A stretch of 64,000 nucleotides of DNA from Macrostomum hystrix (GCA_950097015.1 CATNEN010000031.1:372001-436000); one strand, 5' to 3'. Shown: positions 11,535-58,836, numbered from the stretch's first letter. Notes: generated by a model not told the origin, from the sequence alone. Made by a program: numbers and translations.

Positions 11535-11990
11535 TCTCACTATCTGCCCCGTGTCTTTTTTCTCCTGTCTCACCATCTCTCCCGAGTCTTATCTCTCACT
11601 GTCTTATCTCATCTCTCACTGTCTTATCTCATCTCTCCCGAGTCTTATCTCTCACTATCTTATCTCATCTCTCCCGAGTCTTATCTCATCTCTCACTGTC
11701 TTATCTCATCTCTCCAGAGTCTTATCTCTCACTATCTTATCTCATCTCTCCCGAGTCTTATCTCATCTCTCACTGTCTTATCTCATCTCTCCCGAGTCTT
11801 ATCTCTCACTGTCTTATCTCATCTCTCCCGAGTCTTATCTCTCACTATCTTATCTCATCTCTCCTGCTCACTATTTCTACCGAGGCCCAAATCATCTCTC
11901 CTGATTCATATCATCTTTCCCGTGTCTCATGACATCTCTACTGTCTCATCTAATCTCTTCCGTGCCTCATCTAATCTCTCCTATCTTATA
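11535..11990. repeat. Duplicate of the 8195-8650 minisatellite
   Basis: Lies inside the tandem duplication. Confidence 0.9.
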
Positions 11991-13233: not shown

Positions 13234-14513
13234 CTACTTGTCTCCATCGTGCCGAAGGTCAACCCGCTCAGGAGTGGTGGCCGCCTCCTGCCGGCGGAAG
13301 TCCTCTCGGCCTAGGATGTAGACCACCAGCAGGGCGTAGGCCGTGAGGACCAGGCCAAGGCAGTTGGACAGCTTGGCAGCGTCGGGCAGCTTGGCATAGT
13401 CGCCGGCAAAGAAGTTCTTTTCTGTTAGGCCCATCAGGCAGGCGGCCACAGAACCGACAAATATGGCGGCGCCCCAGAATCTGGTTTGGTGGGTATATAC
13501 GAGCCGTATTTATTTATAAATAATAATACCCGCAGCCAGCGAGAAGGCCATTCTTCCCTTTCCGCTGGCTCTAAAGCACACACGCACGCACTCTCACAGG
13601 TGTGTACATCTGCCCTGACTCTCATCGTCAGGCAGAGTGCACTCTCACTGTGCCTTGGAGGTTGGCCCTCAAGGGCGTAAATTGCCCGACACGCCCCCAA
13701 GCCTTCTCTCCGCGTCTGCGCCCCAAATGAATATGTCCTCGCCGCGGAATCGAGCTCAGGGACCTTGTTACGAGATGCGTTAGGCCGTTCTACCACTCAG
13801 CACTATACTTATTTCCTTATTTTTACTATCTGTTTGACAATCACTCACATGTTAAGAAAAACGTTTTCATTGATATTTCAGAATATTTGTGCAATCTGAA
13901 TTGAGAACCACCTAGTAAGCTTTGATTTAGAATCGAATCGCCTGTGGACCAATATAGCTGTGTCATAGCTTATGATCAACCCTGTATTAAAACCCCAATA
14001 GCAATGAAATTCAACAGATCTGATCAACGCGCACCTATGCGAAGATAGATAAGCCGCCCGCAGACCATGGGACACGCCGGGAAAAACAAACATGACAAAG
14101 GCGGCCACCCACTGCATGCAGAACAGGATGACAACAGCCAGGCCGACCCAGGAGTGCAGACTGTACATGTTCGGTATGGTATGAGTCGGCAGGTTGTGAT
14201 ATTTGAACACGGCCACAAGGCCAACAATGCTAAAAACCAGAGCCAGGATGTGTAGTACGCCGTGTACGCTCTTCAGCAGTGGCTTGCGAGTGTTGCGAAA
14301 GACGCGATAAATCAGCGCCGAATTGGCGTACAGAAACACCATACCTATGACCATGAACAGTGGATGGTAATTGAACACCTTCTCATTGTTCCAATCAAAG
14401 CCGCCAAGGTATTTTGTTAGCCAAACGGTTGTCATGACAACTGCACTGGCGCCAGTAATTAAGGCGAGTAGTACCCACACAGTGAACGACTTTAGAGAAT
14501 TGTCGCCAGCCAT
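13234..14513 (-). CDS. Cytochrome b561 family protein (CYB561/Dcytb-like), exons 14513-14035 and 13480-13234, 241 aa
   Basis: Heme-ligand motifs FNYHPLFM, KSVHGVLH, SLHSWVG and, across the splice CATAG|gtgcgc...aaaccag|ATTCTGG, HRFWG followed by LMGLTEK; six hydrophobic segments; 726 nt in frame. Confidence 0.93.
13500..13808 (-). mobile_element. tRNA-derived SINE family B, in the cytochrome b561 intron
   Basis: Minus strand reads gctgagtggtagaacg...gagctcgattccgcggcg (A box, B-like box), then cctgacgatgag...cagggcagatgtacac, shared with the 27275 and 32545 copies. Confidence 0.8.
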
Positions 14514-29258: not shown

Positions 29259-29475
29259 TGTAAGGTGTGCGGTGATTCATTCTCGCATCGCGTCGTAAGT
29301 TGGCTTCGTAAATTGTGCAATGCGATGTACATTCTCTGGTGTACATAGCCAATATAAAGTCGCTCACTTGAGGCTTTAGTCACCTCGTGTTTTCTCGGTT
29401 CTCGCGCAAGTCTCGCCTTCTGACCTAGTTTACATTGGTGGCAGCGGTCTCTATCTCAAGTCGGCCCACTCACTC

Positions 29476-30312
29476 ATGGCGCACGCCAATGCACTTTTGC
29501 CACCCAAGTTTTCCGGCTCAGACGATGCCGACATCAACATGTGGCTGCAAATGTTTGAGGACTTCGCCACGGATTCCGAGTGGGACGACAAAAAGATGGC
29601 ATCGAAAATCCGGCTGCTCTTATCTGGCGAGGCGCTCGTCTTCGTGTGGGACCTGCCGGAGGAGAAGAAGAAGAGCTTCGCGACCATCAAGGACGAGCTG
29701 GTCAAGTTCTACCGTGGCAAGGAGAACTCGTTCTGCGCCATGTCGGAGTTCGAGAGCCGGAAGCGACGCCAAGGAGAGTCGCTGAGGGAGCTGTGCCACG
29801 CTCTCAAGCTCTTGTACCGGAAGGCACGCCCTGACCACGATCAGACGGTGAGAGACTGCGAAGTGCGACACCGACTGCTGGCTCTGCTGTCGAAGGAGAT
29901 TCGCGAAACGTTGCTGAAAGACGCTGACTGCAGCAGCAGCAGCCCGGAGCAGCTGGCGGACCGCGCCACGGCTCTTGAGAGCATCGGCGGCAGAGGCGCC
30001 TCTGCAAGCATCGCGGTAACATCGGTGAGCAGCCAAGTGGTGGACCGGCTGGAGCAGATGCAGGAGCAGCTGGCGGACCTGGCTGCGACGGTCGCCACCA
30101 TCAGCAGCCGTGGACAGCGCGGTGCGCGAGGAAGAGGAGCTCGGGGGAGAGGCAGCGGTCGCGGGAAATGCTTCAACTGCGCTCAGCCCGGCCATTTCGC
30201 GGCCCAGTGCCCCAGGCAGGCCGCGCCAGCCGTGCCGCCCGTGTGCAGCCGCTGCTCAGGCAAAGGGCACCGGGCCGAGGTCTGCCCGACCCCGGCTTCG
30301 GGAAACTTCTGA
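29476..30312 (+). CDS. gag: Retrotransposon Gag with two CCHC zinc knuckles
   Basis: Intact 278-aa ORF containing CFNCAQPGHFAAQC and CSRCSGKGHRAEVC. Confidence 0.93.
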   Translation: MAHANALLPPKFSGSDDADINMWLQMFEDFATDSEWDDKKMASKIRLLLSGEALVFVWDLPEEKKKSFATIKDELVKFYRGKENSFCAMSEFESRKRRQGESLRELCHALKLLYRKARPDHDQTVRDCEVRHRLLALLSKEIRETLLKDADCSSSSPEQLADRATALESIGGRGASASIAVTSVSSQVVDRLEQMQEQLADLAATVATISSRGQRGARGRGARGRGSGRGKCFNCAQPGHFAAQCPRQAAPAVPPVCSRCSGKGHRAEVCPTPASGNF

Positions 30313-30358
30313 GGACTGGTGACCGTGGGCCATCACCAGCCCTGCCTAGCAAGGCCCA
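30300..30358 (+). promoter_or_regulatory. -1 programmed ribosomal frameshift signal (slippery heptamer plus H-type pseudoknot)
   Basis: G GGA AAC at 30300-30306 in the gag frame; stem 1 ctggtga (30316-22) / tcaccag (30333-39); loop tgggcc pairs with ggccca (30353-58). Confidence 0.8.
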
Positions 30359-31370
30359 AACCGCTTCGCTCTTCCTGCCCGGCAGCATCGCAGGCCGGCC
30401 CTGCAGGTGGCTGTTCGACACGGGCGCGCAGGTGACGCTCGTATCAGCTGCCCAGTTTCGAGCTCTGGGAGTCGCAGCTCAGCTTCATCCGCCTCTCAGC
30501 ACTCCGGTCGGGATCGATGGTCGACGCTTGGAGTCTCCGGCATGCGCAACGCTGGCCATTCAGCTGGGCGGACTGCCGCCCATGGAGCACCCGGTGACGG
30601 TGGTCGCCGACATTCAGCCGGAATGCGTGCTCGGCATGGACGCCATCAGCAAGATGTGCTCAACCTTCAGCGTGGATCTCATGTCGTCTTCTGTCCTGCT
30701 GGGGTCAACCAGGATCCCAGTCCTGCCAGACAGGAACTCCATGCCGGCCTGCCGGGTGGTGCCCACCGCCGTGGTCGCCAGAGTCGCCAGCACCGTGTCC
30801 ATCCCAGCCCGCAGCCGCGTCATCATCCCGGTCAAGGTGGCATCGTACGTTGAGCAGGGTCTGTTCGAGCCCAGCTCTGACTTCGTCGACAAGACCGGCC
30901 TGCTGCCGAACCGGGCTCTGGTGGTCTCCAGCGCGGACGGCAACCTGCCGGTGGGAGTCTGCAACCTGAGCGCCGACCCGGTGGTGCTCTACCAGAATCA
31001 GGCCATCGGCAACTTCGACGCTGCCGAGCCTCACGGGCCCGACGGTGAAGCTGCGGAGGAGGCCGGCTTCAACATCAACCCGGAGCTGAGCCGGTCGCAG
31101 CGCGAGGTCATCGAAGCCCTGCTGAACCAGCATGAGCTGGCATTCGCCAGTCACGAGTTCGACCTGGGGACCACGCACCTACTGCAGCACGAGATCAACC
31201 TGGAACCCGGCAGCCGCCCCATCAAGCACGAGACGGAGCTCGGTGGTGCACCACGACCGGCTGAAAGCGTTCGTGGCGAGGCGGCCGCAGCCCGCTGTCC
31301 CGCAGCCCGCCGCCGACCCACCCGCTGCAGAGAGCGACCGGCCGCCCAGTCCGGCTGCCGACCCGCGTGA
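30300..31370 (+). CDS. pol: Truncated Pol in the -1 frame: aspartic protease plus the start of RT, then out-of-frame fusion to the integrase C-terminus
   Basis: WLFDTGAQVTLV protease motif; RT N-terminus ...LLQHEINLEPGSRPIK stops abruptly; another frame carries VVHHDRLK...RRSNRTRRQPD, typical of pol ends. No YxDD, RNase H or DDE core. Confidence 0.85.
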   Translation, partial: GKLLRTGDRGPSPALPSKAQTASLFLPGSIAGRPCRWLFDTGAQVTLVSAAQFRALGVAAQLHPPLSTPVGIDGRRLESPACATLAIQLGGLPPMEHPVTVVADIQPECVLGMDAISKMCSTFSVDLMSSSVLLGSTRIPVLPDRNSMPACRVVPTAVVARVASTVSIPARSRVIIPVKVASYVEQGLFEPSSDFVDKTGLLPNRALVVSSADGNLPVGVCNLSADPVVLYQNQAIGNFDAAEPHGPDGEAAEEAGFNINPELSRSQREVIEALLNQHELAFASHEFDLGTTHLLQHEINLEPGSRPIKHETELGGAPRPAESVRGEAAAARCPAARRRPTRCRERPAAQSGCRPA

Positions 31371-32544
31371 GACCTGGCAGGAGCTGCTGGACGAACCGGC
31401 GCCTGCTGGGCCCAGACGCTCGAATCGGACTAGGAGGCAGCCAGATTTTTTTGTCGCGCAATTTTGAGCTGCTAACTACTCGTATTTTTTTGTTCTTATG
31501 AGGCTTGTAGTGCATCATTTTAAGCTGCCTAAAATATTTGTTTATTTTTTTGTTTTTAATGTCCTCAATTTAGGGATGGAGTGATGTAAGGTGTGCGGTG
31601 ATTCATTCTCGCATCGCGTCGTAAGTTGGCTTCGTAAATTGTGCAATGCGATGTACATTCTCTGGTGTACATAGCCAAATATAAAGTCGCTCACTTGAGG
31701 CTTTAGTCACCTCGTGTTTTCTCGGTTCTCGCGCAAGTCTCGCCTTCTGACCTAGTTTACAAATTATTATTATTAAATATTATTACTTATCAATCAAGGC
31801 AAGAAAAGGGCGAATTCGCATGCAGCAAAAAAATATGAGACAAACAATATGAAATTTTACGAGCGGGAATACATTCTGGAGTACAAAAATTCACTACTGT
31901 AGAATTTCGGTTTATTTTTAGAATTTGAGCCTTTACGAAAGGACAACATGCGATTTATATTGTGTTTCAGCATGCAGGAAATAGTTAACCAGCATCAGAC
32001 TTAAACAAGGCTCAGACTGGATATAAGCTATAATTATTTGTTATAATATCTATAGCATGGAAGCGCTTTTTTCAAAGTTGATGAAGTTTGAGATTAAAGT
32101 TTTAAACTTAAAGTTTGAAGGGTTAAAAAAAAGTTAAAAATAAGTTGTCAAGAAGCAATGAATACGAGCTATAACTGGAATATAATATTACGAACATACG
32201 TTTACACTTGAATAAAAAATGCTTTAATGTGATACAAAATTCCCCGCTTTTTAAAAAGGAGCAGGTTTGACTCGATTAACAGACTGATGTGTTTTATACA
32301 TAATGTGAATAGCTCTTAACAGAAAGTTTTAAGTTAGCTCTTAACATTGCATCATCAATATGCAATGAGTACTGTATGTATGATGTATGATTACTACTGA
32401 AATACAACTTTAAGGCATACTGAAATATCGCTGCTCACTCTGATAGTTGTGAATGTGAATCATTCTGAATATATGAATTAATTAATGATCATTTTTGCAG
32501 GAAGGCTGTTGCGTCGATCATCATTTTGCGTCGATAGAACCGTT

Positions 32545-33366: not shown

Positions 33367-36300
33367 TCACTTGCAATTTACGCGATCAGGCAGAATTTTC
33401 GGCTCTTCGTCATCGTAAACGGACTAAAAAGGTGAACTTTGCATTCATTAGTTGTACTTTTAGTTCAAAATCTACTCGAAAAATCACCGTGCAACTCACG
33501 TTCGGGTCGATATACTCGTCGTTGTACACGGTCTGAAATAAGCCAAGAAAGGAGCAGTATAATAAAAAGGATGCAAAGAACCACCTAGTTGCTATCAGAG
33601 AAACATGAAGCTTTTTCAAAAACCTACATTCGGATCTATTGCCAGTGGCATGCTGGTCATTGGAATCGAACCCGTCTGTTTTCGAAGCACGAGCAGTTTT
33701 CTCGAAGCTTTCATTCGGCTAAACATCCGCATCGCAACAGAAGCTATTGCAGTGATAGCCAGAGTCACTACCACAGCCACAATGAGAACCGAAAACAGCT
33801 GGTCATTCGACCATTGGCCCGAATGCGGTTCTAAATAAATAGAAATCGATTTTAAAACAAAGCATCATTTTAAGCAAGTATTTTCCTCGATTCACTACTA
33901 ATGCTACGTTCCTACACCAGTGCATCGGCGTAATCTATAAAAATTTGCACATTGAAGTCATTCTTAAATACTGTCATTTTTCTCAAGGCTAAGTGGTCAA
34001 TTTCAACAGTTTAAGTACGACAAGCATGAGTTACTAGTCTGCATCGGATTGCTGACTGGAAAGCGAGACTCCAATGTGAACTCCTCAATGCCCTGTTTAA
34101 TTGAGCAGGTAAATTTGACAGGCTCGGACTTGTTCATAGCGATCTCAGCAGAGTGCTGTCCGACTAGGAAAACTTCAGAGCCGCTCGCAGTTACGACCTA
34201 AATTAGAAGGATCTCTTAATTTCAAATTGAGGCATTCAACGAGTCTAAAAGGGCATATTTCTCACAAATCGAGTTCCTGTGTTAGTGAGTAGTGAACAAT
34301 TTACTATTGGGCTCGGAAAACCCTCGGTGACACTGAAGAAGATGAGCACAGATGATACTGAAATCTTTGCTCCCGTCAGCAGCACATGAGACCGGACTGA
34401 AAAGTCACGAAAACGGCACCATGTTTGGATCGCACCAAAAAAATGAAAAAAAATCGATAGCACCTGCCCCAATCGGGCCAGTTTGCGGCTGAGAAGGGCT
34501 GTTGAGTCAGTTGCCTGGGGCATCCTAAACCCAGAATTTCGCCAGCTAATTCTGGTACCCATTCAGCATCTGGGTGAACTCAATAAATGCCGAGTTAAGT
34601 GTCTTTCTAAAAGTTAAAAATGGTTACACTGAAGTCTGGAATCGAACCCGCGATCTTCGAGTCGTGAGTCCAACGCTCTAACCACTAAGCTACAACTCCC
34701 AACTCCTTCCTGCCAAAACAGGCACCATTACAGAGGCATATGGTTTAATTTTATTTGCGCTTGTAAATATTTGCGAGCATAAATTTTCTCAATTAAGTTA
34801 TTCATTAAGTAATGTTTGATTTGGTGAGAACATTACGACGAATTAGGCTCGTAAATTATATACATAGAAAACAATTCCGAAATCACTTACAGAGAGCGTG
34901 GGGCAGCTGATAGCTTTGCCAGGTCTCAGCAATTCCAGATTGGTTCACCAGACACCTGATATATCCAGAGCTGCCCCAGCTTTTGCTAACAACCAGGCGG
35001 AAATTTGTGCTTGAATTCGTTATCTGCAGCATAAAAGAAACGGAATTCATCAATCCTCATGCATATACCTTTGCTATGATAGAGTTCATGAAGCATTTAT
35101 AATGTTCATTTGCGAGTCCTTTGGCATCAATATACCCTCAGCACAGCGAGCAAGAAATTATGCCAAACACTAAATTTTATTTAATTTCTTGTCTGTTACG
35201 ACTTCGGTTTTGGAAGTAAACAATGAAGACTTTTAGTCAATCATGGGCAAAAACAACTAAATAGACCAAAGCAATGAGGATTCCTCTCATTCCTCTCTAG
35301 GATTCAGTATCAGCTCACCGAGAGGACTGGCAGGTTGATCTTGTCAACAGCAGGAGTCTCCAGTAGGCAGGTGCAGATTGTTGGCACCTGACTAAGGTTC
35401 GTGAAATCAAGCGTCACGGTAACAGTGTCGCCGTGCTTCCAATGGCTGGCTGGTGGCAGCTGCAATTCAGGTCTAATCGGTGCTGCAACAAAAATTTTCT
35501 GTACTCTCTTACACATCTATTGAGAAATGAAAGCTGGTAAATTGTACTCGCATGATCACAGGAATTAACAGCTTACCAACCAGCTCAGGTAGCTGAAGTG
35601 TTTGATTGCTTCTTATGCAGGCTCCTTTGAGCACCGACGCACAGAAGATCTGTTTGCCGGACATATCGTTCCGAATATTGAGCCTATACTCAGATTTCAG
35701 GCTGATAGTATGGGGTGCGGTGGCACTTTCCACGAATTCCTGATCGGCGATTTAAGAACATTCTGAACATAAAAACGCTAATTGTTTTGTGCTCAAGGCT
35801 GGCCAAACCTAAAGTTGCGCAGCTTTTATTGTAATACCTTTACAAGGAGAAACTTGACGAGATTGTCATACTTTATGAATAATTACTTGTATTATCAGTG
35901 TAATTATAACCATTCTGCTACTAAATCCAAATTCAAACGAGCCATGTGAGAGTATTTAGTATTTCATGCATAGGAGGTTGTACTATTGATTTACAAAATT
36001 CCTTTATGTATTCCTCATAGGCATTTTGCACTGCTCTTTCTATCATCCATGCATTTTATAACGTAATTAAAAAACGCTTTTCTAAAAGCCTCTGAAAATA
36101 ATTCAGAGATATTACAAAAACATTAGAATATTAACAGTAGAACTACCGTGGGGGGGAATTCTCCCCCCAGGCAATTTTTTGTGCTGCACCCTAACGGAAC
36201 TACGCAAGCACACGAAACTCAAGAGCACGGGCCAACTTTTTGTTGCGCATCTTCTGAGACAAGAATCAAGTCGCCAGTTCTCTTCAGACCGTTGAGATAT

Positions 36301-39300
36301 TCAATGGTTCTGGCCGAAGGTCAGATTTTTTCCATCAGTGCTAATGTATTTCAATGTAATGTAATGTAATGTAGTGCTAATGTAATTTATTACACCCCGA
36401 TACACAAATTAGCACTGCGCCTCAGTGTGGCGTTGCCAGGCCTTCAAAAATTTATCCGCATGTCACCCGAATGTGCCTGCATCATCTCCGACTTCGGTGG
36501 TGACTTACTTTTATCTAGACGGACTGCTGGACCTTCAAGGGCTACAACAGGTGGAAATAGGCCATTATGGACACCCTGACGCGAATTTCTCCAATTTCAC
36601 TGACCAAGCCGAAATTAGGCGCAGCTCAACCACAGTACACCATCGTCTAGTCTGTCAACCAATCAGTCACCACCCAACGCTGTTAGCATTCAGGCGCTGC
36701 CAAAGAAACTTCAACAGGGGGATTACAGTCCCCCCCTTGGTATAAAAACGGGCGTCAAAATGGCTTGGTAGTCCTACTGTTAAACTGAGCAAATGAATAG
36801 AACAACCTCCCATAGATCACATACTAAAATATTGAGCAGCTGTCTCACATGCCTTCACTACGGCGTTCTTCTACTCTAGTATTCATTAAATCCAAGACCC
36901 AAAATTAACTTCACGAGATGGTTATCTAGTGTTGCTTGCCTGGCTGCTAGGAGTCAAAAGACGATCCGCTGAGTCCCCGACACTGCTGGCCAGCTTGCAG
37001 AAGTGTACAGGCTTTGGGTAAGCCGCTTCAGTTACAAACGTGAACCGGAGCTTTGTTCCCTCTGCCAGAAAGTGACGCGACCCAATCTGAACCGCGTTGT
37101 GCTGTTCGATGCTGACGTTCCTTGGCACCTGAACTGTAAATATCGGAACGGTATTTTTCCTATAGTTTGTTGCTGGGACAGGAATTTGGTACGATGATGA
37201 TTTTAAGATAGTTTTTTGAAAGTTATATTAAGAGGATGTTCATAGAAACGAGCTTGAAAAATTAGCCCCGCGACGAGGAGATCATCAAAGCATTAGGCAA
37301 TAGGACATTGCGCATTAACTCACTGATATGTCCGATAGGTTCAGTCAGTGATACTTTAGGTCCATCGGGACAATTAAAGCTGCACGTGAAGTTACCGCCT
37401 TGCATGTCTGAATTGACCGGGAGCGTCGCAACTAAAGACCTAGGATTCCCATCCTGAAGAAGTTAGTGAGATTTTATTAGTCGCTTTATCATTAGTTTGA
37501 GCTGTGTTCGTGAAGCAGTACTCATATGATCTGATATGCCAACATTTATATTCTAACGGCGAGAAGCGCAATATCTAGGCATTCAGACGTCCTTTTACAA
37601 ATAGGTATCCTCAAAAACTTTTTAGAAGTTAGAATTGATTATATTATTGCTATGACAGGCGTAAGATAAGCTTGGAAACTTAGCAGTTGGTTGTTGGTTT
37701 CTCTCTGCACTGAAGAGAGTCTAGAACAGGGGTAGGCAAACTTATTTGCTGCCGGGCCAAAGAGAGAACCTAAAAGACGACAGCGGGCCGCATTGACTGT
37801 ATAAATATGAGATTGGGGAGAGATGAGACACGGGAGAGATGAGACACGGGAGAGATGAGACACGGGAGAGATGAGACACGGGAGAGATGAGACACGGGAG
37901 AGATGAGACACGGGAGAAGATGAGACACGGGAGAGATTAGACACGGGAGAGATTAGACACGGGAGAGATGAGACACGAGAGCGATGAGACACGGGTGAGA
38001 TTAGACAGGGGAGAGATTAGACACGGGAGAGATGAGACACAGGAGAGATTAGACACGGGAGAGATTAGACACGAGAGCGATGAGACACAGGAGAGATTAG
38101 ACACGGGAGAGATAAGACAGGGGAGAGATTAGACACGGGAGAGATTAGACACGAGAGAGATGAAACAGGACACTGTAGATGTCAGAAGGGGCAACGGGCC
38201 GGATTTGGGAGCTTCGAGGGCCGCATCTGGCCCGCGGGCCGGAGTTTGCCGACCCCTGGTCTAGAAGTTTGCGTTTTTGCCGTCTTATTTTTTTGTTCTT
38301 GCGATTTTTTTATCACCCCTCCCATCAGCTAACACAATCGACAATAAGAGCAGCGGCTAAAAGTGGGGATCGTCAGTCAGTCAGAGCCGTCGTCAGTCGT
38401 CAGTCTCAGTCAGTCAGCCGGCTCCTCATCTAGCCAGCTGACTGGAACTTTTTCTAGTCCGTATGTGAGGAAATTTTTTTTACAGAAATCACTATAGCCG
38501 GGACCATAAATTATGTATGACCGAGCAACTCATCGAGACACAGAAACTGTGACATAAAGTATGTTACATTTTACGCTAGGCATTTCGGTTGTTGTCTTTT
38601 GAAGTATAAAATAAGCAACGTATTAGCAACGGATTGATGAGCTCACCACTTGGACAATCGTGCTTCCACTCCGCGATTCAATGCGACAAGTAGCATTATT
38701 AACAAACTGGAGCAGGCATGGAGGGTAGAGATTGATGGCAATATTTTGACCGTCTGTGAGAACACTCAGACGGTTCATTTTGCAGGCGCAACTTCCTGTA
38801 TTGGATGGCCGGCATGAAAAATCCAGAACTGCCTCGGATACTGAAATTAAGCACAAGAAAAAGTCACACCGCGTCGCAAAAACCATTCAATAAAAGTCAT
38901 GGCTCATGCCTTTTTCGATTTCCAGAGACTTAAAGTTCATGCGGGCGAATCTTCTCAGCAAAATATAGTCGGTAATCTGTAACGAATAGCAATCCAGGTA
39001 AAGTAACGAGCTATAATTTGCTATTCGTTGATGAAGACACTCGTAAGAACTTACCTCTGTGCAGCTGGGGGCTCTGCAAGTCACAGTCATGCGTGACTGG
39101 CTTCCCTCCATCCTCGTGGCCCCGCACCGAGTTAAAAGGCTCACATCGCTGTCGATTGATGCATAGCAACTTCTTTCAGGAGTCAGACCGGGCGGTTGTC
39201 TGTCACTTAAGAAAATCTCGATGTTTTCTGCCTGGTTGAGAGCTAAAACAAATTTCATTTAAACCTTCTGTTAGCTAAACTGTCAGTTCAGTAAATTCAT

Positions 39301-39797
39301 CTTGTGCTTCGAATATGTGCAAGGTCGTAGCTCGTACCAAGATTTTACCCCAATGAAATTATATAATAAAATAATGAAGGTAATACACAATGCTTTACCT
39401 GTAGATTAACACTTACCATTGTCATTAGCAACAACAGTTACAGACCGCACCCGTATGGGTCGTGTAAGCTCTATTAGCAGCCAGTGATAGCCGAACTTAT
39501 CAGGCAAATCGGAGTAGAAATAATTCCACAAATCAATTCTTTTCACAGAATCTCTAAAGCAATCTTCGTTATTCGAAGACTGCCAGGAGTTTGCGATCAC
39601 ACCATGCTTGACCTTGAATGTGACACTGGCATTCACACACTGCGACCCTGTAGCGTCTGCAAAGTAACGAATCAGGTATGTCACGTACATAGGCTCCGGA
39701 TATCAACGCTGAAAAGCACAACTAGAGGCTCACCGCATCCTACGGAGCAAAAAGCCACGCACACGGCGCAAAGCGCACAGAGCAGAGCCGTGAACAT
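33367..39797 (-). CDS. Receptor paralog C: signal peptide + F-type-lectin/discoidin-like domain + four Ig-like domains + TM + Tyr tail, ~707 aa. Exons 39797-39734, 39656-39417, 39242-39055, 38976-38910, 38840-38647, 37453-37324, 37133-36940, 35739-35577, 35482-35319, 35023-34891, 34396-34266, 34197-34035, 33830-33628, 33532-33500, 33423-33367
   Basis: Fifteen phase-consistent exons (2124 nt, no stops). Signal MFTALLCALCAVCVAFCSVGC; TM LFSVLIVAVVVTLAITAIASVAM; tail AIDPN|TVYNDEYIDPN|SVYDDEEPKILPDRVNCK*. Two donors are GC. Domain names come from motif pattern only. Confidence 0.78.
34553..34701 (-). mobile_element. SINE family A in an intron of paralog C
   Basis: Minus strand reads gggagttgtagcttagtggttagagcgttggactcacgactcgaagatcgcgggttcgattcc...aagacacttaactc...ttcacccag...gggtaccag. 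Confidence 0.85.
36174..36490 (+). repeat. ~300-bp dispersed repeat, copy 1
   Basis: Aligns by eye with 46634-46910 (gcaagcacacgaaactcaaga.cacgggccaactttttgttgcgcatcttctga; cctcagtgtgg..ttgccaggccttcaaaa). Confidence 0.85.
37727..38258. mobile_element. hAT-superfamily MITE (532 bp) with an internal 16-bp GAGATGAGACACGGGA array
   Basis: TIRs CAGGGGTAGGCAAAC / GTTTGCCGACCCCTG; perfect 8-bp TSD GTCTAGAA at 37719-37726 and 38259-38266. Confidence 0.93.
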
Positions 39798-41249
39798 TAA
39801 CGTTGGATAAGAGCACGTAATTGATCAGCTGAATTGTACCGGTATCAGTACCGAGCCAGCAATGCGCAGGCTGGAGTATCACTAAGGCGCAATTGCTAGA
39901 ACAGCTTCTCAATTTATAGCACACAAATTCAAGGTGTTGTTATTTTATTGGCCCAACCAACTAAACTACTTTTATAGTTCAAACTAGGTCAACATTGGTG
40001 ATCCTGCTGGTCTAGGCATGTTTCCATCTTCGATATCTTAGCTGATTGGATAAAATTCACGTTTCTGGGTTTAGCTTGCAAAACGTATAGTTGTAAGTAA
40101 AGGTAATGATAAGAAATAGCGTCAAACATTTTCGAAATAGGCTTTTTACTTGTTCAGATGTGGTCGGTCTATTAGAAGCCAGTGAATTACGAATTGACAG
40201 GGTGTACAGGAATGCGGAAACGAAATTAAACTCGATGTAGAAAGAAATTTAAGAAGAAATAAGCGGAGTTTAAATTATCGATCGATTTAGCAGGAAAATT
40301 TAATATGACTCACGTGACTTCGAGAGCCTAAAGATAAGCCACACAATTTCAATCGACAAAAATGTAAAACTTCGTCAGGAAATTGATTGATGACTCATCG
40401 TTCAATCTCTCAGGGCATGAAAGCGTTTAAATATATATAAACAGGAAAAGTGCTTTAGACAAGGCGACTTTCGCAAAATTCATGAGACCAACATTGTTCA
40501 GAAAGCTATGCATTGTTGGAATTAGCATATGAAAAAATGTCTTTTGATTGTCTCAAAATCCATACACAAACTTGTATGCCAGCGAAGAAAATAGTTTGTA
40601 AAATTTGAAGTACCTGAAGATTAAATTAATTGTTTATTGTTTAAAGCTGCTTTAGTTCTAATCTGGATTAGATTTTAGCTCGTATTTTCATCGCATAAAT
40701 TAACCAGCGTTCCTTTTTACGAAGTTATATCGTGCACACGCAACCGAATGCTGTACGAGCATTAGTTTGAAATTCGAATAGTTTAAATAGTGTAAAACAT
40801 ATCGGGTTTTCATTATACAAAACAACTTAAAATGAAGAAGACGAAGAATCTACTTCAGTGTACGAGTCGTAAGATTATTCGGTAGAAACAAAAATTGTTA
40901 ACAGTTACGAGCGTGTTGTGTTAATTTGCGTGACAACTTTAATCTTTAATATAACAAGTTGGCTCGCTTCGCAAAATCGCTTCGGGGTGCAAAACAAGGA
41001 ATAATGTAAAATATAGGTATAGGAAGAATTCGGTAAATGTTTTGTAACTGAATTTGTAACTAAAACCCACTGGTTTATTCTTATCCTGTAGCTTTTTGCG
41101 CCGACAGAAACCCGAAATCTTTGATCGCCTCGAGCGGTGGAGCGGCCATAGCGGCAAGTCAGCTCGAGCTGTAAAGACGACGAGCTGTATCACTCAGTCC
41201 AGCTTTTTGAAAAATGTCGCATGGCGCTGGTTTTTGCAGATTTTATGGA

Positions 41250-42130
41250 TCCTTGAGCTGTGACATTGCTCGCTGACACTGCTCACTTAAATATAAGGCT
41301 AGCCCATAGAAGCAAGTTACCGAAATGCAACAATCCGACTAGTTCGTGGTCACTGCCACCTACCAGAGCGCTGCTAACTGTTTCACGGTCGGTCGTCAGA
41401 ACCAACAGCCACAGGGCCTGCAAAGCTCTGGTGGCTCGGGCCGCTCAGCTGCTCCATATGATCAATGATAGCTGGTCCATTGAACGCCAGAATTGATGAC
41501 CGCTTTTAACGATGCCAAGCAAGCGTTTGCCGGTGCTGCCATGTTGACGCATCGGCTATTCGACTTGCCAATTAGCCTGATGCTCTTTGACATCGTCATC
41601 GGCGTCATCAATGGCTTGGAAGCCTCTAGCTTTTATCAGCCGACAACCTCGCCCATTTCGCCCGTTCAGCCGACAACCTCGCAACATAGTTGTCCCCAGC
41701 GAGTGTTTCAGCAACGTCCGCATCGGTCTGTTAGGCCCCTGCCGATTTAAGTACAGCCGCTTAAATCCCACACTGGGCTGCCATTAGTGCCGGTGGAATC
41801 CGCAAGCTAGGCTCCCCTGCCACCTGCCGGAATCAATGGCAGAGCTTGTGTCATTGTGATAATAATGACCAGTTCTTGGCGCAGTTGCTCAAATCGCAGC
41901 CGTACATCCCGCTGCCCGCTGCCCTCAACTCCTGTACGCCAGCGTTTTTCAATCGAATGGAAGCCGACACCACTATGATTCTCCGTTTAGAGTGTTTCAG
42001 AGACTTTCATTCTGAACCCGTCGTGAACGTGAGTGGCGACTGCCTAAAATCAGTGATACTGATTCTGCCAACGTTTTCCTGTGCGGTTGAACCAACGCCG
42101 GCTTGCCATCCAACCTAGTAGCTACTGGAG
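41250..42130 (+). pseudogene. Degenerate Ty3/Gypsy pol remnant (RT connection / RNase H / integrase N-terminus)
   Basis: Broken frames contain AFNDAKQAFAGAAMLTH and WKPLAFISRQ, matching the RT-RNase H region; many stops and frameshifts; no LTRs recognised. Confidence 0.6.
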
Positions 42131-42856
42131 CAACCAACCTTTTTCAGGGCCGTTGCTAACCATTTTGGCAGTAAAGGTAACCATACGTGTCGGCTCGATG
42201 CTGCGGAGCTGTGATGGCGATAAGCATCTGCAATATTTTGTCTATGGCTGCAACCAAGCCCCATTTATGCCCGAACTTCTTGCATTAAACAGAAACAGCA
42301 CGCTCGCACTTTCTCTGTTTAATAAGCCAGCGCATTGTGCTGTTGCTTGGCCTATAGGCAAGGGCGTGCTTTTCTAAAGAAAAAATTATCATACGACTCG
42401 TATTTACAAAAAATTGCAGTGTTCAGATATTAAATTTATGGAAAAAGTTCCGATTCAAGTATTGGTCTCAAATCTCCAACACCATATTGTATATGGTATG
42501 CATAAATGATTTTTGTGTTTGCAGCGTTAGTGAGACATAATCAAGTCATGCATCTTTTTCGAAGGCAAAAACGTATCAAAAGTTCTTAAACCTTAAAAAT
42601 GTTGCTAGCAGTCAACGTTGCAGTTAAATTGATTACGAGTACATTAAAACTTGAGTAGTTCGTACTTCTGAGTTCGAAAGTCCTCGCTCTATTCATACGG
42701 TGTAATGAGTAGATACCTAAAAATTAGCATATCGCTTAATAATTTCCGCGGAACATCAATTAAAAAGTGTGCGAATTGATAGGGTATTGACAACGACGCC
42801 AGTTTAAGTGAAAGCAACAGATTTTAGTACCGCTTTCTAAAGCTCTTCAGTGTCTT

Positions 42857-45742
42857 TCAGTGTCTTCGAATGTCTTCGAGGTGGAGTTCGTACTCATTCT
42901 CGTCGAAAGTCTAAAAAGAAATTCCGTGAAATAGTTATACCAGTTTTATAAGAGATGACCGAGTCTGGCAAAGAAAACTGCGCGTGTAAGATGCATACGT
43001 TAGGATTTATCTTAGAAGAAGCCCCAGAAGGATTGCTCAGAGTTTGCTTCATTCCAGAGGCATTTTTTACGCAGAACGCCACGCAGATGACGCCGAAGAG
43101 GGCCAGCGACAGCGCACCGGCCAGGGCGAGAACTGTTGCGCGCATCTTTCCAACAAAAGTTCCTGGCGTCTCTGGTTCTTCCCATCCTCGGAAAACAGAG
43201 AAGGCAACCCTTGCAGTATTGCATTAAATCTCGCATTCTCCATGAAACATTCATCAATGAGTGAATAAGTACAAATAACCCACTCACTAAAGCACTCACT
43301 TATGAATCCAATGCGCTCGGTTACATTCACAGAGCGGCCATTGACACATTGAAGAGTACAGGTCAAGAAGCCACCTTGGATGCCAGGGCTGACCGAGAAC
43401 CGAGTAACCAATGACTCTGAACTATTTTCCTGTTGAATATTATATGACTAGACCAATTTCATGATTAGTAAGAGATAGAGAGAGGAAGAGATGCTTATGA
43501 AGTAACAATGGCTAGCTGCATATGTGCCCCATGAGGATGAGAGTGGAATTTATCGAATGTACGATTACAATGTGCTATAGACTAGTAATTAGGAGCTACA
43601 GGTCGTATATTTCTACATACCGTTGAAATGTTTCTCGTAGTTCCACTCGGTGATTTGATGCGACAGCTGGCCTTACGGAACTGGTGTTGGCACGGAGGAC
43701 ATATTTTCAAAGCAATTTCGTCGTGCATTTTAAGAAAATTCAGGCCAGGAAGCCTACAATTGCGAATGCCTTGAACAGTGGGCAGGCAATTGAAAACCAA
43801 AGCCGGCTGCAATGCTGAAACAGAAACAGAGTCAAGCTAAACAGAACACATTCCAAGTGGGTGCAATGCTGAAACATATATTCAAGCTAAACAGAACACA
43901 TTCCAAGTGGATGCAATGCTGAAACATATATTCAAGCTAAACAGAACACATTCCAAGTGGGTGCAATGCTGAAACATATATTCAAGCTAAACAGAACACA
44001 TTCCAAGTGGATGCAATGCTGAAACATATATTCAAGCTAAACAGAACACATTCCAAGTGGGTGCAATGCTGAAACATATATTCAAGCTAAACAGAACACA
44101 TTCCAAGTGGGTGCAATGCTGAAACATATATTCAAGCTAAACAGAACACATTCCAAGTGGGTGCAATGCTGAAACATATATTCAAGCTAAACAGAACACA
44201 TTCCAAGTGGGTGCAATGCTGAAACATATATTCAAGCTAAACAGAACACATTCCAAGTGGGTGCAATGCTGAAACCGAAACTGAGACAAGCTAAACAGAA
44301 CACATTCCAAGTGGGTGCAATGCTGAAACCGAAACTGAGACAAGCTAAACAGAACACATTCCAAGTGGCTGCAATGCTGAAACAGAAACAGAGTCAAGCT
44401 AAACAGAACACATTCCAAGTGGGTGCAATGCTGAAACATATATTCAAGCTAAACAGAACACATTCCAAGTGGGTGCAATGCTGAAACATATATTCAAGCT
44501 AAACAGAACACATTCCAAGTGGGTGCAATGCTGAAACATATATTCAAGCTAAACAGAACACATTCCAAGTGGGTGCAATGCTGAAACATATATTCAAGCT
44601 AAACAGAACACATTCCAAGTGGGTGCAATGCTGAAACCGAAACTGAGACAAGCTAAACAGAACACATTCCAAGTGGGTGCAATGCTGAAACATATATTCA
44701 AGCTAAACAGAACACATTCCAAGTGGGTGCAATGCTGAAACATATATTCAAGCTAAACAGAACACATTCCAAGTGGGTGCAATGCTGAAACCGAAACTGA
44801 GACAAGCTAAACAGAACACATTCCAAGTGGGTGCAATGCTGAAACCGAAACTGAGACAAGCTAAACAGAACACATTCCAAGTGGGTGCAATGCTGAAACA
44901 TATATTCAAGCTAAACAGAACACATTCCAAATGGCAGTACCCTTTGTGATTTCCAAAGCCTGGAAGCTCATATATTTAGCAGTTTTACTTTTGACGTGGC
45001 TCCTCAGCAGAATGAACTCTGTTAACTGCAATGATGAATGAGGGCTTTTAGTTTTGCTCCAGTTGCTTTCTGCTTACCCATCTCAAAACTAACCCTTGTA
45101 CAGTCGAAGTATCTGCAAGTCACCACAAGGCTAGTCCGGCCTGGCTCCCTCTCAGTGACTCCGCACCGAGTGAAGGAGCCCACGTCACTTGAGAGACTTG
45201 CATAGCAACTGCCCATTACCGGTGCCAAACCCGTAGGCCGTTGGTGGCCCATAAAAATCTCTATGTTCTCAGCAATGTTGGGGTCTAAAATGAATGTTTA
45301 ATTTAAATGCACGAAAGTAGTGAATAGAGAAATGGATGAATCGTACCCTCACCAGTATTAGGAGCGTAAACAGTGACCGACAGAACACGAATGGGCTGAG
45401 TCAGCTGTAGCAGCAGCCAGTGGTAACCAAAGTCATCAGGGGTGTTTCTAGAACGAAAGAATTTCGCTGAATCCTTGTATGTGACGGTGAAACGAAAACA
45501 GCCATTTTGAAACCCTGACGATTGCCAAGAATTTGCGACATTATTCTGGGTGATGTTAAAGCTGATGCTGTGAGCTTCGTGCTCGTACGGGACCTCATTA
45601 CAAACTGGAAAAGTTTGGGATCGAAAAAATACTGTAGTGCAGAGAGAATACAAACTATTTCCAAACAAAATACCAACTCACAGACTTCAATTGGCCATAC
45701 AGCGTTCGCGCACAGCATGCATAGCAACCAGAGCTGAGGCAT
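42857..45742 (-). CDS. Receptor paralog B: signal peptide + lectin-like domain + one Ig-like domain + TM + short Tyr tail, ~395 aa. Exons 45742-45682, 45631-45347, 45284-45094, 45025-44941, 43814-43621, 43429-43300, 43186-42999, 42910-42857
   Basis: Phase-consistent (1188 nt). Exon-for-exon similarity to C (ANSWQSS...FGYHWLL; AENIEIF...SCYAS; PPC..QF..A.CRI.S.SG; QGG..TC), with identical 194- and 130-nt exons. TM VLALAGALSLALFGVICVAFCV; tail INPN|TFDENEY. Confidence 0.75.
43806..44935. repeat. 50/54-bp minisatellite (~22 units) filling an intron of paralog B
   Basis: Unit gtgcaatgctgaaacatatattcaagctaaacagaacacattccaagtgg (50 bp), plus a 54-bp variant. Confidence 0.96.
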
Positions 45743-46633
45743 GATACGAGCGTAGCTGCTGCTGAGTCAGCACAGACAGTGGCACCCGGGAACCGCGTGT
45801 AACAACTGCAGCAACAATATTTATCAGCACCTAAATCGAGAGGTGTCGTCGTATGCTTATGTTCTGTGCTGTCTAGATGCTGTCGTGCACAGCACAGTTA
45901 CCCCATTGGTTTGATGAAATTAACACTGGAGACGGCTGAGGTGGAAGGCTGCGTCCTAATCAGTCCTGAAACCCTATCATTAAAACCGAATACTGTGTTT
46001 TATTTTAGCTTGCGAAAGCGCTTTTAAATTCACCACTTAAGCTAAGAACTGTCTGCTACATATCAAGTAAAGTCCTATCAAAACATGCCACTGAAGTTCT
46101 GCGTTGTGCTTTGATCTTTTCTTGTTTGCCTAGTACCTTAAAAATTAGACATCATACATTAATGTCCATCGCTGACAGGACATGACAGAAAGCCTTGAAC
46201 TTTCAGTTCTTCCATAAACTGACAAACTGGATCGAGTTTAAGCTTGAACTAATTTAAGCTTCAACGATGCCAAAAAGAATTTTCACTCGCATGTTTCCAT
46301 CCTGTCATCATAGCAAAATTATGTTCGCCCCGCTAGTGCATGTATTCCCTTAAGTTGTGAGACGATCTTGTCATGACAAAATTTGCGTCTTTGTTTAAAA
46401 AATAAATACAAATACTGTAAGTCCAGGTTTTTTAATTCTGATTTGAAGGTGTTTTGATACGAATTTATTGTGTATGTCTTAGCAAAGAGGCAAATTTTGA
46501 AATCATTCGCGCTTTCAACCGGAGCCATCCCGCCAAGCAAGCTCAATTTAGATATTATAAGCGCCATTGAAGCAGCAACTTGAGTATTGAAGCGAGTACG
46601 AATGAACAGTAGTACCAAGGGAGAGAAATGACA

Positions 46634-46910
46634 TTTTTTGTGCTGCACACAAACAGAGCAACGCAAGCACACGAAACTCAAGAACACGGGCCAACTTTTT
46701 GTTGCGCATCTTCTGAAACAAGAATCATGTCCCTAGCTCTTCAGACCGTTGAGATATTCAATGTTTGTGGCCGAAGGTCAGATTTTTCCTATAAGTGCTG
46801 TGTATTTGATACGTACCCCTAAACTTAAATAAGCACGGCGCCTCAGTGTGGCCTTGCCAGGCCTTCAAAATTTATCCGCATATCACCCAAATATGCCTGC
46901 ATAATCTCGG
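46634..46910 (+). repeat. ~300-bp dispersed repeat, copy 2
   Basis: See 36174-36490. Confidence 0.85.
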
Positions 46911-47184
46911 TCTTAATAGTCCTACTTTTAATACGTTATACGTTAAAGGGTCATCAAAGCAAAAATTCATTTGCAATATAAGTATTACTTGCAGAACTAT
47001 GTGCAAAAATACTGTCAACATATTCGATCGAAAAGTGACTGTGAATGGGGTGAGCGATTGAAAACTTTCGACTCTGGAACGGACTTCCATAAAAATTTGA
47101 CCAGGAGTATTCGTAGTTAGCATCTCTCGGATGAACTCGAGCTCTTGGAGCTCAAAGGTATATTGCAACAGTTCTTGTCATCAT

Positions 47185-49520
47185 CTATTCTTCTTCCTCA
47201 TCGTACACCGTCTGAAAAGCCAGGTTCGTTTTCATGGCCTCATTTTGAGCAGCTGTTGGCATGGCGAATTTTAGCATCGCGAAATTCGCAGTACAGAAAC
47301 TCACGTTTGGATCTACCAACAAAGCTCCCGGTACGAAATTTGACGGGAAAACGCTCTCCTCATAAGTATACGGTCTGAAAAATTCAGCTAGATCGTCAGG
47401 ATTATATCGGCAAATTTGGTTGCTTATAGGGGAAATGGCAGCAAAGGGTCTCCTTATTTTTCTGAGTGGCACCTCACGATATTTAAAACCCTAAATTTGG
47501 CCTATACTTGTCGGCATTAAAGGTTCTTATGCCGTCTTCATATGGGCATTCGGATGCATACGAGTGCATTCAATATTCAGTATTGCAAATTGTTGCAAAA
47601 GTTCTATTTTCCTGATCAATCCACAGACCTGCAACGAACTCACATTAGCGTTAGGCAATGATATTCCAGATTCCAGTGGAGGCTGCACTGTGTTCTCATA
47701 GTAAACGGTCTGAAACAGAACATCAGGTAAATACGTCTTTGAGCCACCTGTAGAACAAAATACTGTAAGCACTTCATCGGATCTGTGACACTCATGTTCG
47801 GATCCACAAATCTAGTCGCGGATTGAGACTGGTCTATGTTTTCCTTATCGTATACGGTCTGAAAATTATCATGTATCTACTATAATTGGATTGAAAGAAT
47901 TGCTTCAACGCATGGAAAATCCTGGCTCAAACGTACATTCGGATACCTCCCATGCGCCACAGGGACCCAGGTGTCTGCAGGCGCTTGAGTACGAGCCGTC
48001 CATCTTCTATGATTTAGCCAAATGACAGCGGTGTTGCCACTTGACCTTCTGATGCGGGCCCAGACTGAGATGACGGCAAGAAGGACCAGAAAGACAGCTC
48101 CAGTCAGGCCGAGAGCTAAGAAAACCATGAAAGTCTTGCCATCCTTCTTATCCTCTGGTTCGGAAAGCTGAGTCTTTCTGGATTTGATTTCTAAGGCGAA
48201 ATCATTTATGTCAAGGAAGTCCTAGCGGTTCTGCAACACAGTGCAGCTGATGTTGACGGATCGAGGTTGCTCTTTAAGACCCACCTGGGCAGAGTACTGG
48301 CCCAAGGTGAAAATTTCATTGAAGTATTTAGTCATCACCGTCTAAATTTAGGTTTCAATTGTTTTCAAGCTGCAGATAAGACACTATTTACACTTTTAGA
48401 AATCCAGTGAATTTAGGCAACCATTCGACAGCTTACATATCGCATCCCAGAGCTGGTATAATGATTGAGCAGTTCACTCGCGGCATCGGGTTCCCATCTG
48501 CAATTCTGATGCTCACAATTCTGAGCCGAGCTGTTAAACGCTCTGCGTCTTCTTTTAAGTCACGTAAACTAAAAAACTCACAAAGGACAGTAAGCCTCGT
48601 GTTAACCAATTCACTCAGATGCTCGTCTTGAATGAACTTGCAGACAACAAGCTTTTGATTATGTTCCTTCCGGGCAAGGAGCATGAAATTAGATGTATAT
48701 ATGTTCCCAGCAACTGTGCTCTGTGGTACATTTTGCAATGCCAGTCGGGAGTCCTTAAGCCGGCACCTATGCACTCGGACAGGAGGTCGGCTTTCAAATG
48801 AAATGAGACTTCCGTGCACCATGCTACCTACAGTGACGGCACCCGCTTTTTTGATGTCTACTATATTTAACACTCTGTCTGAAATGAGGGAATGAAAACT
48901 ACACAATAAATACTCGTACTTTCATCAAATTAGAGAGTTAAGAAAGTGATTTTTCTAACAGTTGACCGAGACGTTTTGAATACTGTTAGCGCTAAACACA
49001 GTTACGCTCGTAGCGAGCCGTGAGTCTGGAGCGCCGTACAAGTGACTCTCGTGTCACTTTTGTGTGGGTGTATTTCATTTGTCTGTAGCTCTGAGCCGAC
49101 ACGTTTTCTTTGCAGAATAGCCTGGGGAATAAAAGTTCGCTAAGAAATTCGCTAGTGGACTCTGCAGTGTATAAATGAATAGCATTTGCACATACGATTT
49201 TGCCGTTGTCTGCAACGCAGCTATGAGCAAGCACCGGGTTTCCGTCGCCTAATCTGACCGTAAAATAGGCGCTGACGCCTTCATAGACACTGAAAGCCAG
49301 CTGAAATTCAAGCGGAGGCTGCGGCTAGTCTAAAAGGGGATGATAAATTTTCCATCGCATTGATTACAGCATGATTTTTTTAATTCATGTCTTCGCATAA
49401 AAGCTCACAGAAAACCGACAGTCTGTGACAGACTGAGAAAACCGATTGTAAATTTCAACATTTCCTGTCTGAGTCGCAAGGAATTTCAGGGTGCCACCGT
49501 TCATTGAGCACGTAGCATTA
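47185..49520 (-). pseudogene. Receptor paralog A (Ig-like domains, TM, four PN|TVY tail exons), apparently decaying; 5' end not found
   Basis: IADGNPMPRVNCSII matches C's VTEGFPSPIVNCSLL, and EIFTLGQYSAQ matches EVFLVGQHSAE. In-frame TAG at 48224-48222 before the TM; AT instead of GT donor at 47795; 70-nt (frameshifted) tail exon 47374-47305. Confidence 0.7.
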
Positions 49521-49544
49521 ATGCTAAAGATGTGGCTGCATTTT

Positions 49545-57769: not shown

Positions 57770-58836
57770 CCGGGTGGCCCATGCGTTTAAGGACAACCTT
57801 AAAAATAGAAGAAAGCAAAGCCAGCGGTAGCTAGAGCATAATAGTTTTGGTCATAGACAAAATAGTATCTATATAGTCTGTAGCTGCCGCGAAAATTTTC
57901 GGCAACTTAGCATTAGCCATAATAATAATAATAATAATTGACACTAGACCCAAGGGCCAGTGCAGGTGTTGTGTGTCAGGCACACTAGCAGGTGGGGACT
58001 GCACACCTAATTTAGCATTAGCCATGAATCGCGCTAAACGTTTGATGGTGGTAGACCAGCTCGCGCGGGGTATAAGCCCAGCACAGATAGCAGAGAACCT
58101 CAATGTTGCAAGGTCGTTTGTTTACGCCGTCAAGAGCGACATTGAAGAAGTTGGAGCTGCTGCGGCAGTTGAAAGGAGACTCCAGCTCTGCTGCGGAGGA
58201 ACACCGCTATATGCCTCGCCAGCAACATGCCAAAGGTGCCATGTTTCTCGGTGTCGTGGCTTCGGACGGCAGGGTGGCTCCCCCGATCTGGAGTGAAAAT
58301 CAACTCAGCCGAGTACATCCGCATGCTGCAGGATCATGTACTGCCATGGATTCGACACAACTTTGCCCCAGGTACGTTTGTTTTTCAGCAGGACGGCGCT
58401 CCTGCCCACACGGCTGTCGCTACTCAAGAATTTCTTCGCCGGGAGCTCGGCGAGGACTTCTGGGATGCGACCACTTGGCCACCATCGAGTCCAGACTGTT
58501 CCCCTCTCGATTACTTTGTGTGGAACAACGTGGCCCGCGTTGCATGTTTAACAACTTATGCTACCGTGGAGACTCTCCAAGTTGCTGTTAGTGCTGCCTG
58601 GTCAGCTCAGGGCCCTGCCGTCATCAGAGGTGCCTGTACCAAGTTTCGGTCTCCCATTGAAGCCGTGTATGCAGCGGAGGGGGGCTACATTGAGTAAATG
58701 TTATTTTTAGTTGCCATCTAGACATTATGGCGGTCAGTTAAAATGTTAAAGTTTTCGTTTGTTGGTTGTTTTTATATTAAAAATGTATATACATTTTATC
58801 ATTTTTAAGTTGTCCTTAAACGCATGGGCCACCCGG
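57770..58836 (+). mobile_element. Tc1/mariner (maT-like) DNA transposon, internally deleted, 1067 bp
   Basis: TA TSD at 57768-69 and 58837-38; TIR CCGGGTGGCCCATGCGTTTAAGGACAAC(C)TTAAAAAT. HTH-like N-terminus at 58024; C-terminal QQDGAPAH...WPPSSPDCSPLDY; first catalytic Asp region missing; frameshifts present. Confidence 0.93.

Follow-up and report, generated by a model that had tools for sequence, protein, structure and literature searches.

A probable tandem cluster of Macrostomum-restricted receptors with an F-type-lectin-like head, an immunoglobulin-like stalk and a tyrosine tail in Macrostomum hystrix

We analysed a stretch of 64,000 nucleotides from the flatworm Macrostomum hystrix (GCA_950097015.1 CATNEN010000031.1:372001-436000; called here 'the window', with positions counted from its first letter), in which a preliminary description made from the sequence alone had placed, at positions 33,367 to 49,520, a tandem minus-strand cluster of receptors that combine a lectin-like domain, immunoglobulin (Ig)-like domains, a transmembrane segment and tyrosine motifs. 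That outline was borne out: the cluster comprises two intact genes, designated C and B (the first of which is seen in RNA), and one apparently decayed copy, designated A. Exon models for all three were built by hand from stop-free segments, splice-site consensus and comparison between the paralogs. We consider it likely that the locus is a tandem cluster of Macrostomum-restricted, single-pass type I receptors, with a lectin-like head, an Ig stalk, a transmembrane segment and a tyrosine tail.

Gene C (39797→33367, minus strand) has 15 coding exons totalling 2124 nt. Its open reading frame (ORF) begins with an ATG at 39797 and continues uninterrupted for 707 codons to a stop at 33367-33369, with a 3' untranslated region (UTR) that extends beyond 33200. 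A signal-peptide exon (39734-39797) is followed by the three exons of an F-type-lectin-like head (39417-39656, 39055-39242 and 38910-38976) and by four two-exon Ig-like domains of ~108 amino acids each: D1 (38647-38840 plus 37324-37453; 194 and 130 nt), D2 (36940-37133 plus 35577-35739), D3 (35319-35482 plus 34891-35023) and D4 (34266-34396 plus 34035-34197, the former of these two exons having been revealed by transcript contigs). The transmembrane exon (33628-33830), a 33-nt mini-exon encoding TVYNDEYIDPN (33500-33532) and the last exon (33367-33423) complete the protein, with a tail that reads ...AIDPN/TVYNDEYIDPN/SVYDDEE... up to the stop (slashes mark exon junctions). Twelve of the 14 introns are GT-AG and two are GC-AG, with GC donors at 38909 and 36939; the GC at 36939 is confirmed by four transcript contigs, and the intron concerned (35740-36939) can be placed solely as GC-AG.

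Gene C is transcribed and spliced as modelled. The RNA comparison drew on four runs from the same organism, evidently transcriptome assemblies, and each of the four contains one spliced gene C contig of about 2.0-2.5 kb. These contigs agree with the exon model to the base for all introns from exon 5 to the last exon, with junctions at 37324/37133, 36940/35739 (the GC-AG intron), 35577/35482, 35319/35023, 34891/34396, 34266/34197, 34035/33830, 33628/33532 and 33500/33423 in all four runs. About 1000 nt of contig lie 5' of exon 6; since exons 1-5 amount to 883 nt, there is room for all of them plus a 5' UTR. An independent, quantitative check of the 5' exons comes from 31-mers sampled over 38600-39800, of which a share of 0.51 is present in each of the four runs, against 606/1171 = 0.52 expected if only exons E1-E4 were present without introns. 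The exon model of gene C is thus matched by RNA, from exon 5 to the stop through junctions and further upstream through word share, and the summary of the product in the preliminary description (about 707 amino acids, with signal peptide, lectin-like domain, four Ig-like domains, transmembrane segment and two junction tyrosine motifs) agrees with this model.

Intron 6 of gene C also contains a dispersed repeat (36126-36895), which occurs again at about 46300-46900, between copy A and gene B. Over this repeat the four runs show an RNA word depth of 60-675, as against about 15 in gene C. The contigs covering it run out into numerous unrelated flanks or loose ends, and the repeat does not belong to the gene C product. 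The repeat is probably an expressed transposon or short interspersed element (SINE) family.

Gene B (42857..45742, minus strand) is, as far as its sequence tells, an intact paralog shorter than gene C, in which the head is followed by a single Ig-like domain, a transmembrane segment and a tail. Its eight coding exons encode 384 amino acids (about 395 in the preliminary description, which had correctly counted one Ig-like domain and one tyrosine) in an intact ORF, and every intron is GT-AG. The signal-peptide exon (45682-45742) and head exons (45353-45604, 45094-45284 and 44941-45025) lead to a single Ig-like domain (43621-43814 plus 43300-43429), directly after which comes the transmembrane exon (42999-43186), ending in ...KINPN, and then the last exon (42857-42910), TFDENEYELHLEDIRRH followed by a stop. 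The first six exons share their phases with gene C, and the 194-nt and 130-nt exon lengths of gene C are repeated exactly, as had been claimed from the sequence. At the tail junction (PN/TF, within PN/TFDENEY) a phenylalanine occupies the position of the junction tyrosine, with one tyrosine downstream (NEY). Gene B is homologous to gene C and to proteins of Macrostomum lignano; its identity to gene C is 37% in domain 1 and 48% in the head, so that the earlier estimate of about a third of residues matching holds for the Ig part and is too low for the head. When RNA runs were sought for the region of copy A and gene B, the sole run listed was from another organism, at a share of 0.05.

Intron 4 of gene B (43815-44940) is filled by a minisatellite with a 50-nt unit in about 22 copies, detected by Tandem Repeats Finder at 43808..44934 with no strand assigned. 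Within it, the stretch ...TGTTCTGTTTAG... recurs about 22 times and resembles the true acceptor (TCTGTTTCAG) at 43815.

Copy A (47185..49540, minus strand), read directly from the sequence, is probably a pseudogene or remnant. It retains Ig-like ORFs at about 49406-49538, 48995-49324, 48437-48906 and 48225-48341, a transmembrane ORF that ends at 47937, three TVY modules at 47796-47858, 47644-47709 and 47305-47374, and a terminal module, TVYDEEEE followed by a stop, at 47185-47211. The ORF 49324-48995 shares 51% identity with the C-terminal Ig domain of one M. lignano protein (P0020) and also matches a second (P0002). We regard the copy as decayed because of several features. A phmmer search of seven family proteins against all stop-free segments recovered neither head nor D1 exons from the part of the window upstream of the copy; the donor at 48437, the only good one there, is in phase 2 and the next acceptor (48341) in phase 0; the last Ig half and the transmembrane ORF, which share a frame, are parted by an in-frame TAG (48224-48222); the donor of mini-exon 1 is AT rather than GT (47795-47794); and mini-exon 3 is 70 nt long, a multiple of three plus one, and reads TVYL followed by a stop. 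The several Ig-like domains and four tyrosine motifs with which this partial copy had been credited are thus present as ORFs and modules, but they cannot be cleanly joined, and two of the four TVY modules in the DNA are intact. If the damaged mini-exons were skipped, a two-motif tail would still be possible; the ectodomain lesions would stay. Given its several lesions, copy A is more plausibly a decaying copy than a four-motif receptor. The same phmmer search found no further family exons anywhere in the window.

Two further details of copy A may be recorded. Its segments 48437-48921 and 48995-49324 hold whole Ig-like domains in single ORFs, whereas genes C and B split each domain by a phase-0 intron; and a 13-nt sequence at 48578-48566, GTGAGTTTTTTAG, resembles an intron that has collapsed, with the reading frame continuing through it.

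The disabling lesions of copy A are what might suggest that the cluster as a whole is mostly non-functional, a set of transcribed pseudogenes or annotation noise. We find this barely credible, given that the 707-codon ORF of gene C is uninterrupted and identically spliced in four samples, that gene C and M. lignano proteins are colinear and 37-60% identical, that the ORF and splice sites of gene B are all intact, and that the ratio of nonsynonymous to synonymous divergence (dN/dS) is below 1.

The head was characterised through a profile of M. lignano proteins and window exons, searched against all sequences in the PDB. The only two matches were the striped-bass lectin FBP32 (3cqo, E = 7.1e-7) and the eel agglutinin AAA (1k12, E = 0.023). 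For structure prediction an M. lignano homolog served as proxy for the window's own head, to which it is 44-59% identical per aligned exon; its AlphaFold2 model (predicted local distance difference test score, pLDDT, 79.9; predicted template-modelling score 0.82) gave as top Foldseek matches 1k12, the lectin domain of lectinolysin, SpX-1 (a pneumococcal fucose-binding module) and 3cqo, although at template-modelling scores of only about 0.5 and with other galactose-binding-like domains ranking next. Among Swiss-Prot models, the top matches include eel fucolectins 1-7 and the Xenopus pentraxin fusion protein. Pfam assigned full-length M. lignano proteins 15.5-17.1 bits for F5_F8_type_C or F5_F8_type_C_2, below the cut-offs of about 28, and among 20 single-exon translations from the window it left the head without a match and returned nothing useful overall.

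In common with known F-type lectins (AAA, FBP32; domain names FTP or FTLD), the head has an A-x-(W)QSS start, a ...WLL.L..P.R..SVTV... core, an NIEI strand and closing ...ILLR...NF..LE.E strands. It differs from them in lacking the fucose triad, in falling below the Pfam threshold and in being fused to an Ig stalk, a transmembrane segment and a tyrosine tail. In the profile alignment, the two arginine positions of the triad are occupied by N and Q in gene C and by P and I in gene B, and neither gene has the histidine. Profile and predicted fold together mark the head as a divergent form of the F-type-lectin domain, lacking the canonical fucose triad, as the preliminary description had read from its F-type lectin or F5/8C pattern and missing fucose-binding motif; profile match, Foldseek and motif search agree on this. 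Whether it acts as a lectin is uncertain. A 2017 review of F-type lectins includes planaria among the taxa with the domain and gives as its partners C-type lectin domains (CTLD), pentraxin, CCP, FA58C and transmembrane segments; no pairing with an Ig stalk and tyrosine tail figures in that list (PMC5712786).

The stalk repeats, including the cysteine-rich first one, are predicted to be Ig-like. A model of D1-D3 from the M. lignano homolog (pLDDT 78.9) can be aligned with ectodomains of three Ig domains along about 320-385 columns, at E values of about 1e-9 to 1e-7 (best 3e-9), among them nectin-1, SIRP-alpha, ICAM-5, CD22 and RAGE, and also SYG-2, IgLON, NCAM and MAG. Pfam C2-set_2 scores 21.0 bits in M. 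lignano P0002, exactly at the cut-off, and 12.3 bits in one exon of the window. That D1 might be a separate, non-Ig cysteine-rich fold was considered and rejected, as the D1-D3 model aligns with ectodomains of three Ig domains. AlphaFold and Foldseek, which had been recommended as a check, accordingly returned beta-sandwich-type folds for the proxy models, a jelly-roll for the head and Ig-like for D1-D3. Most Ig-like domains at the locus are encoded by an exon pair of the 194 + 130 type, split by a phase-0 intron. Stalk length ranges from one to four Ig-like domains, and the paralogs differ by whole exon modules.

These fold matches bear on a first alternative, namely that the proteins are cell-adhesion molecules in which lectin head and Ig stalk would make cell-cell or cell-matrix contact and NxxY tails would connect to cytoskeletal phosphotyrosine-binding (PTB) adaptors, by analogy with nectins, Drosophila Furrowed and, for the PTB link, integrin beta tails. 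For the stalk, adhesion molecules give the best fold matches (nectin-1, SYG-2, IgLON, ICAM-5, NCAM), and Furrowed, a membrane protein with an FTLD, has an adhesion role (PMC5712786). Furrowed resembles the proteins described here in carrying its FTLD in the ectodomain of a single-pass membrane protein, but it has a CTLD and many CCP (sushi) repeats, whereas the stalk here is Ig-like, with no CTLD or CCP detected by Pfam or Foldseek.

The transmembrane segments of C, B and A contain no charged residue. The tail is built from a module, ...D-P-N/(T or S)-V-Y-x-(D or E)-E, that spans an exon junction, so the motif of gene C, whose junctions are RNA-confirmed, is complete only in the spliced message. 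The tail mini-exons are symmetrical, with phase 0 at both ends; modules can therefore be gained, lost or skipped without a break in frame. The earlier proposal that ectodomain length and motif number vary by exons fits these features, the paralogs differing by Ig exon pairs and by phase-0/phase-0 tail mini-exons. The NxxY of the tail module, in an acidic kinase-substrate context, may be a PTB-docking or endocytic signal. A reading of the tail as an immunoreceptor tyrosine-based inhibitory, switch or activation motif (ITIM, ITSM or ITAM) was rejected after a motif search. A more distant family member from M. lignano (P0004) carries both an ITIM (VVYAQV) and an ITSM (TEYTEI), 27 residues apart, from which we conclude that tyrosine tails of at least two classes serve signalling in the family. 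In P0004 the transmembrane segment and the ITIM/ITSM tail lie in a single exon (L001 15508-15966, NIVC01003746.1); the window genes use mini-exons.

To assess the distribution of the family, a profile built on the first of the head exons in genes C and B was searched against 1.84 billion (1.84e9) representative proteins. About nine of the 15 matches are uncharacterised M. lignano proteins, to which a word-based search added further members. The only other clearly homologous match is a copepod protein with four FTP (F-type lectin) domains, and the rest, a few bacterial or unnamed proteins, are probably spurious; no orthologues outside Macrostomum were found among these representatives. The M. 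lignano proteins (PAA49974.1 / A0A267DMT8, A0A1I8H8M2, A0A1I8GPA9 and others) are true homologues with the same order of head, D1 and Ig domains and a similar exon layout, although at 37-60% identity per aligned exon and, in the P0004 type, without the mini-exon PN/TVY modules; gene C is colinear with P0020 over exons 1-9. Their labels read 'hypothetical' or 'Ig-like domain-containing', no function has been described for any of them, and a literature search on Macrostomum, lectin, immunoglobulin and the M. lignano gene identifiers returned no papers on the family. Within the flanks of the two M. lignano loci that were fetched (at most 10 kb, shorter at contig ends) there is no paralog. As judged by these searches the family is restricted to Macrostomum and unnamed, in keeping with the earlier remark that the architecture belongs to no named family.

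Between genes B and C, dN is 0.45-0.53 and dS about 1.5, giving a dN/dS of about 0.3, a figure that with dS near saturation says little beyond 'old' and no obvious positive selection. The two genes have the look of an ancient duplicate pair held, on average, under purifying selection, which does not sustain the view in the preliminary description, where a dN/dS measurement had been proposed, of a rapidly evolving family. Over about 1.4 kb of exons, three of the four transcript contigs are identical to the assembly and the remaining one departs from it at two positions; the samples may all stem from a single laboratory line. Both the dN/dS and the near-invariant transcripts would fit the conserved partners of an adhesion molecule; set against that reading, genus-restricted, clustered and very divergent paralogs (37-48% identity here) are more typical of recognition families, and no orthologues were found outside Macrostomum. 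We hold adhesion to be a tentative and, on its own, rather unlikely account of the cluster.

Allorecognition is not known for this worm, which is solitary and without known fusion or rejection. The preliminary description had proposed an allorecognition locus and a family of paired receptors, and an allorecognition or paired activating/inhibitory complex, similar to Hydractinia Alr or to LILR, would share the tandem layout of divergent receptors of the immunoglobulin superfamily (IgSF) type with tyrosine tails, and could call on the ITIM plus ITSM of the M. lignano member. Neither proposal is upheld by the data from the window. Transmembrane segments have no charged residue, the window tails are without ITIM, ITSM or ITAM, and there is no activating/inhibitory pair with a common ectodomain (those of B and C being 37-48% identical); the four transcriptomes differ at 0-2 positions over about 1.4 kb, albeit possibly within one laboratory line; the animal is solitary; and the genes have no sequence relation to Alr genes. 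We judge this explanation very improbable.

Macrostomum is a genus of hermaphrodites with fast-evolving reproductive genes, which counts in favour of another alternative, that the proteins serve the recognition of sperm, egg or mating partner. The analogy would be with oyster bindins, which are polymorphic gamete proteins built of F-lectin repeats (PMC5712786). Bindins, however, are secreted repeats of the lectin domain and not transmembrane receptors with Ig stalks, and we saw neither positive selection between B and C nor polymorphism in the four transcriptomes; a reproductive role appears decidedly unlikely.

Snail FREPs are secreted proteins with a C-terminal fibrinogen domain. They and Hydractinia Alr resemble the present cluster as lineage-restricted tandem IgSF families with a recognition module (FREPs) or tyrosine tails (Alr), but both are without an F-lectin head; Alr proteins, moreover, have V-set-like tips and extreme polymorphism (PMC9546547), whereas no polymorphism was seen here in four transcriptomes. 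Siglecs (CD22, MAG) share a glycan-binding tip, a variable number of C2-type Ig domains, a transmembrane segment, a tyrosine tail and organisation in gene clusters. Their head, however, is a V-set Ig domain with a sialic-acid-binding arginine, as opposed to a jelly-roll head and window tails without ITIM or ITSM, and the likeness is best taken as analogy and not homology.

We therefore return to the tandem cluster of single-pass, Macrostomum-restricted receptors. Each protein would carry a signal peptide, an N-terminal jelly-roll F-type-lectin-like domain and one to four Ig-like domains, then a transmembrane helix free of charged residues and, at the end, a short acidic tail with NxxY-type modules. 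The head may bind a protein outside the cell or a glycan distinct from canonical fucose, and the Ig stalk would project the head away from the membrane. Once a ligand is engaged, the NxxY/acidic modules could be phosphorylated on tyrosine and so pass the signal on, whether through docking of the PTB or SH2 type or through endocytosis.

Several points weigh against this interpretation. The fucose motif H-x24-R-x-D-x4-R/K was found by regular-expression search in none of genes C and B and the M. lignano proteins P0020, P0004 and P0016, so the ligand of the head need not be fucose. Both structure models, of the head and of D1-D3, represent the M. lignano homolog and were computed from shallow alignments (16 rows, about 8 lineages). 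In the tails of C and B, a regular-expression search found no ITIM or ITSM; the D-P-N/(T or S)-V-Y module may be read as an NxxY-type signalling motif by its likeness to PTB-binding motifs, and the tail of gene B is without such a junction motif. Lastly, the support for the GC donor at 38909, at exon E3b of gene C, is only indirect.

Our best guess for the role of the receptors is innate-immune-type recognition of non-self or of glycans, with cell adhesion nearly as likely; an immune role is thus no more than possible. More speculatively, receptors with an F-lectin head, Ig domains and tyrosines might constitute a diversified cell-surface repertoire of macrostomids for non-self, invented independently and Siglec- or FREP-like in character. 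In such a repertoire some members would be inhibitory (through ITIM/ITSM) and others would act through NxxY modules, their number set by the symmetrical mini-exons. We regard this wider proposal as unlikely.

The surrounding window is animal DNA with many minisatellites and transposon remains. Segments 7570-8600 and 10910-11940 form a tandem duplication, period about 3.3 kb, with identical ORFs and microsatellites. By eye, we take a 211-amino-acid ORF at 13878-14513 (minus strand) to be a cytochrome b561-type membrane protein, the GC-rich (59%) segment at 29400-31400 to be a piece of a retroelement, with a gag-like zinc-knuckle ORF and an aspartic-protease-like ORF, and 58227-58697 to be a fragment of a Tc1/mariner-like transposase.

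Very little is known of how flatworm cells recognise microbes or other cells at their surface, and a genus-restricted family that combines a lectin-type head with an Ig stalk and tyrosine tails would offer a concrete entry point. Macrostomum is a laboratory model in which RNA interference and transgenesis work, so a receptor role would be directly testable. For the F-type lectin fold, the architecture would add a new domain partnership, with an Ig stalk and a tyrosine tail; and in the tails of these proteins, candidate signalling motifs are assembled across exon junctions, such that motif number may be changed by exon duplication or skipping.

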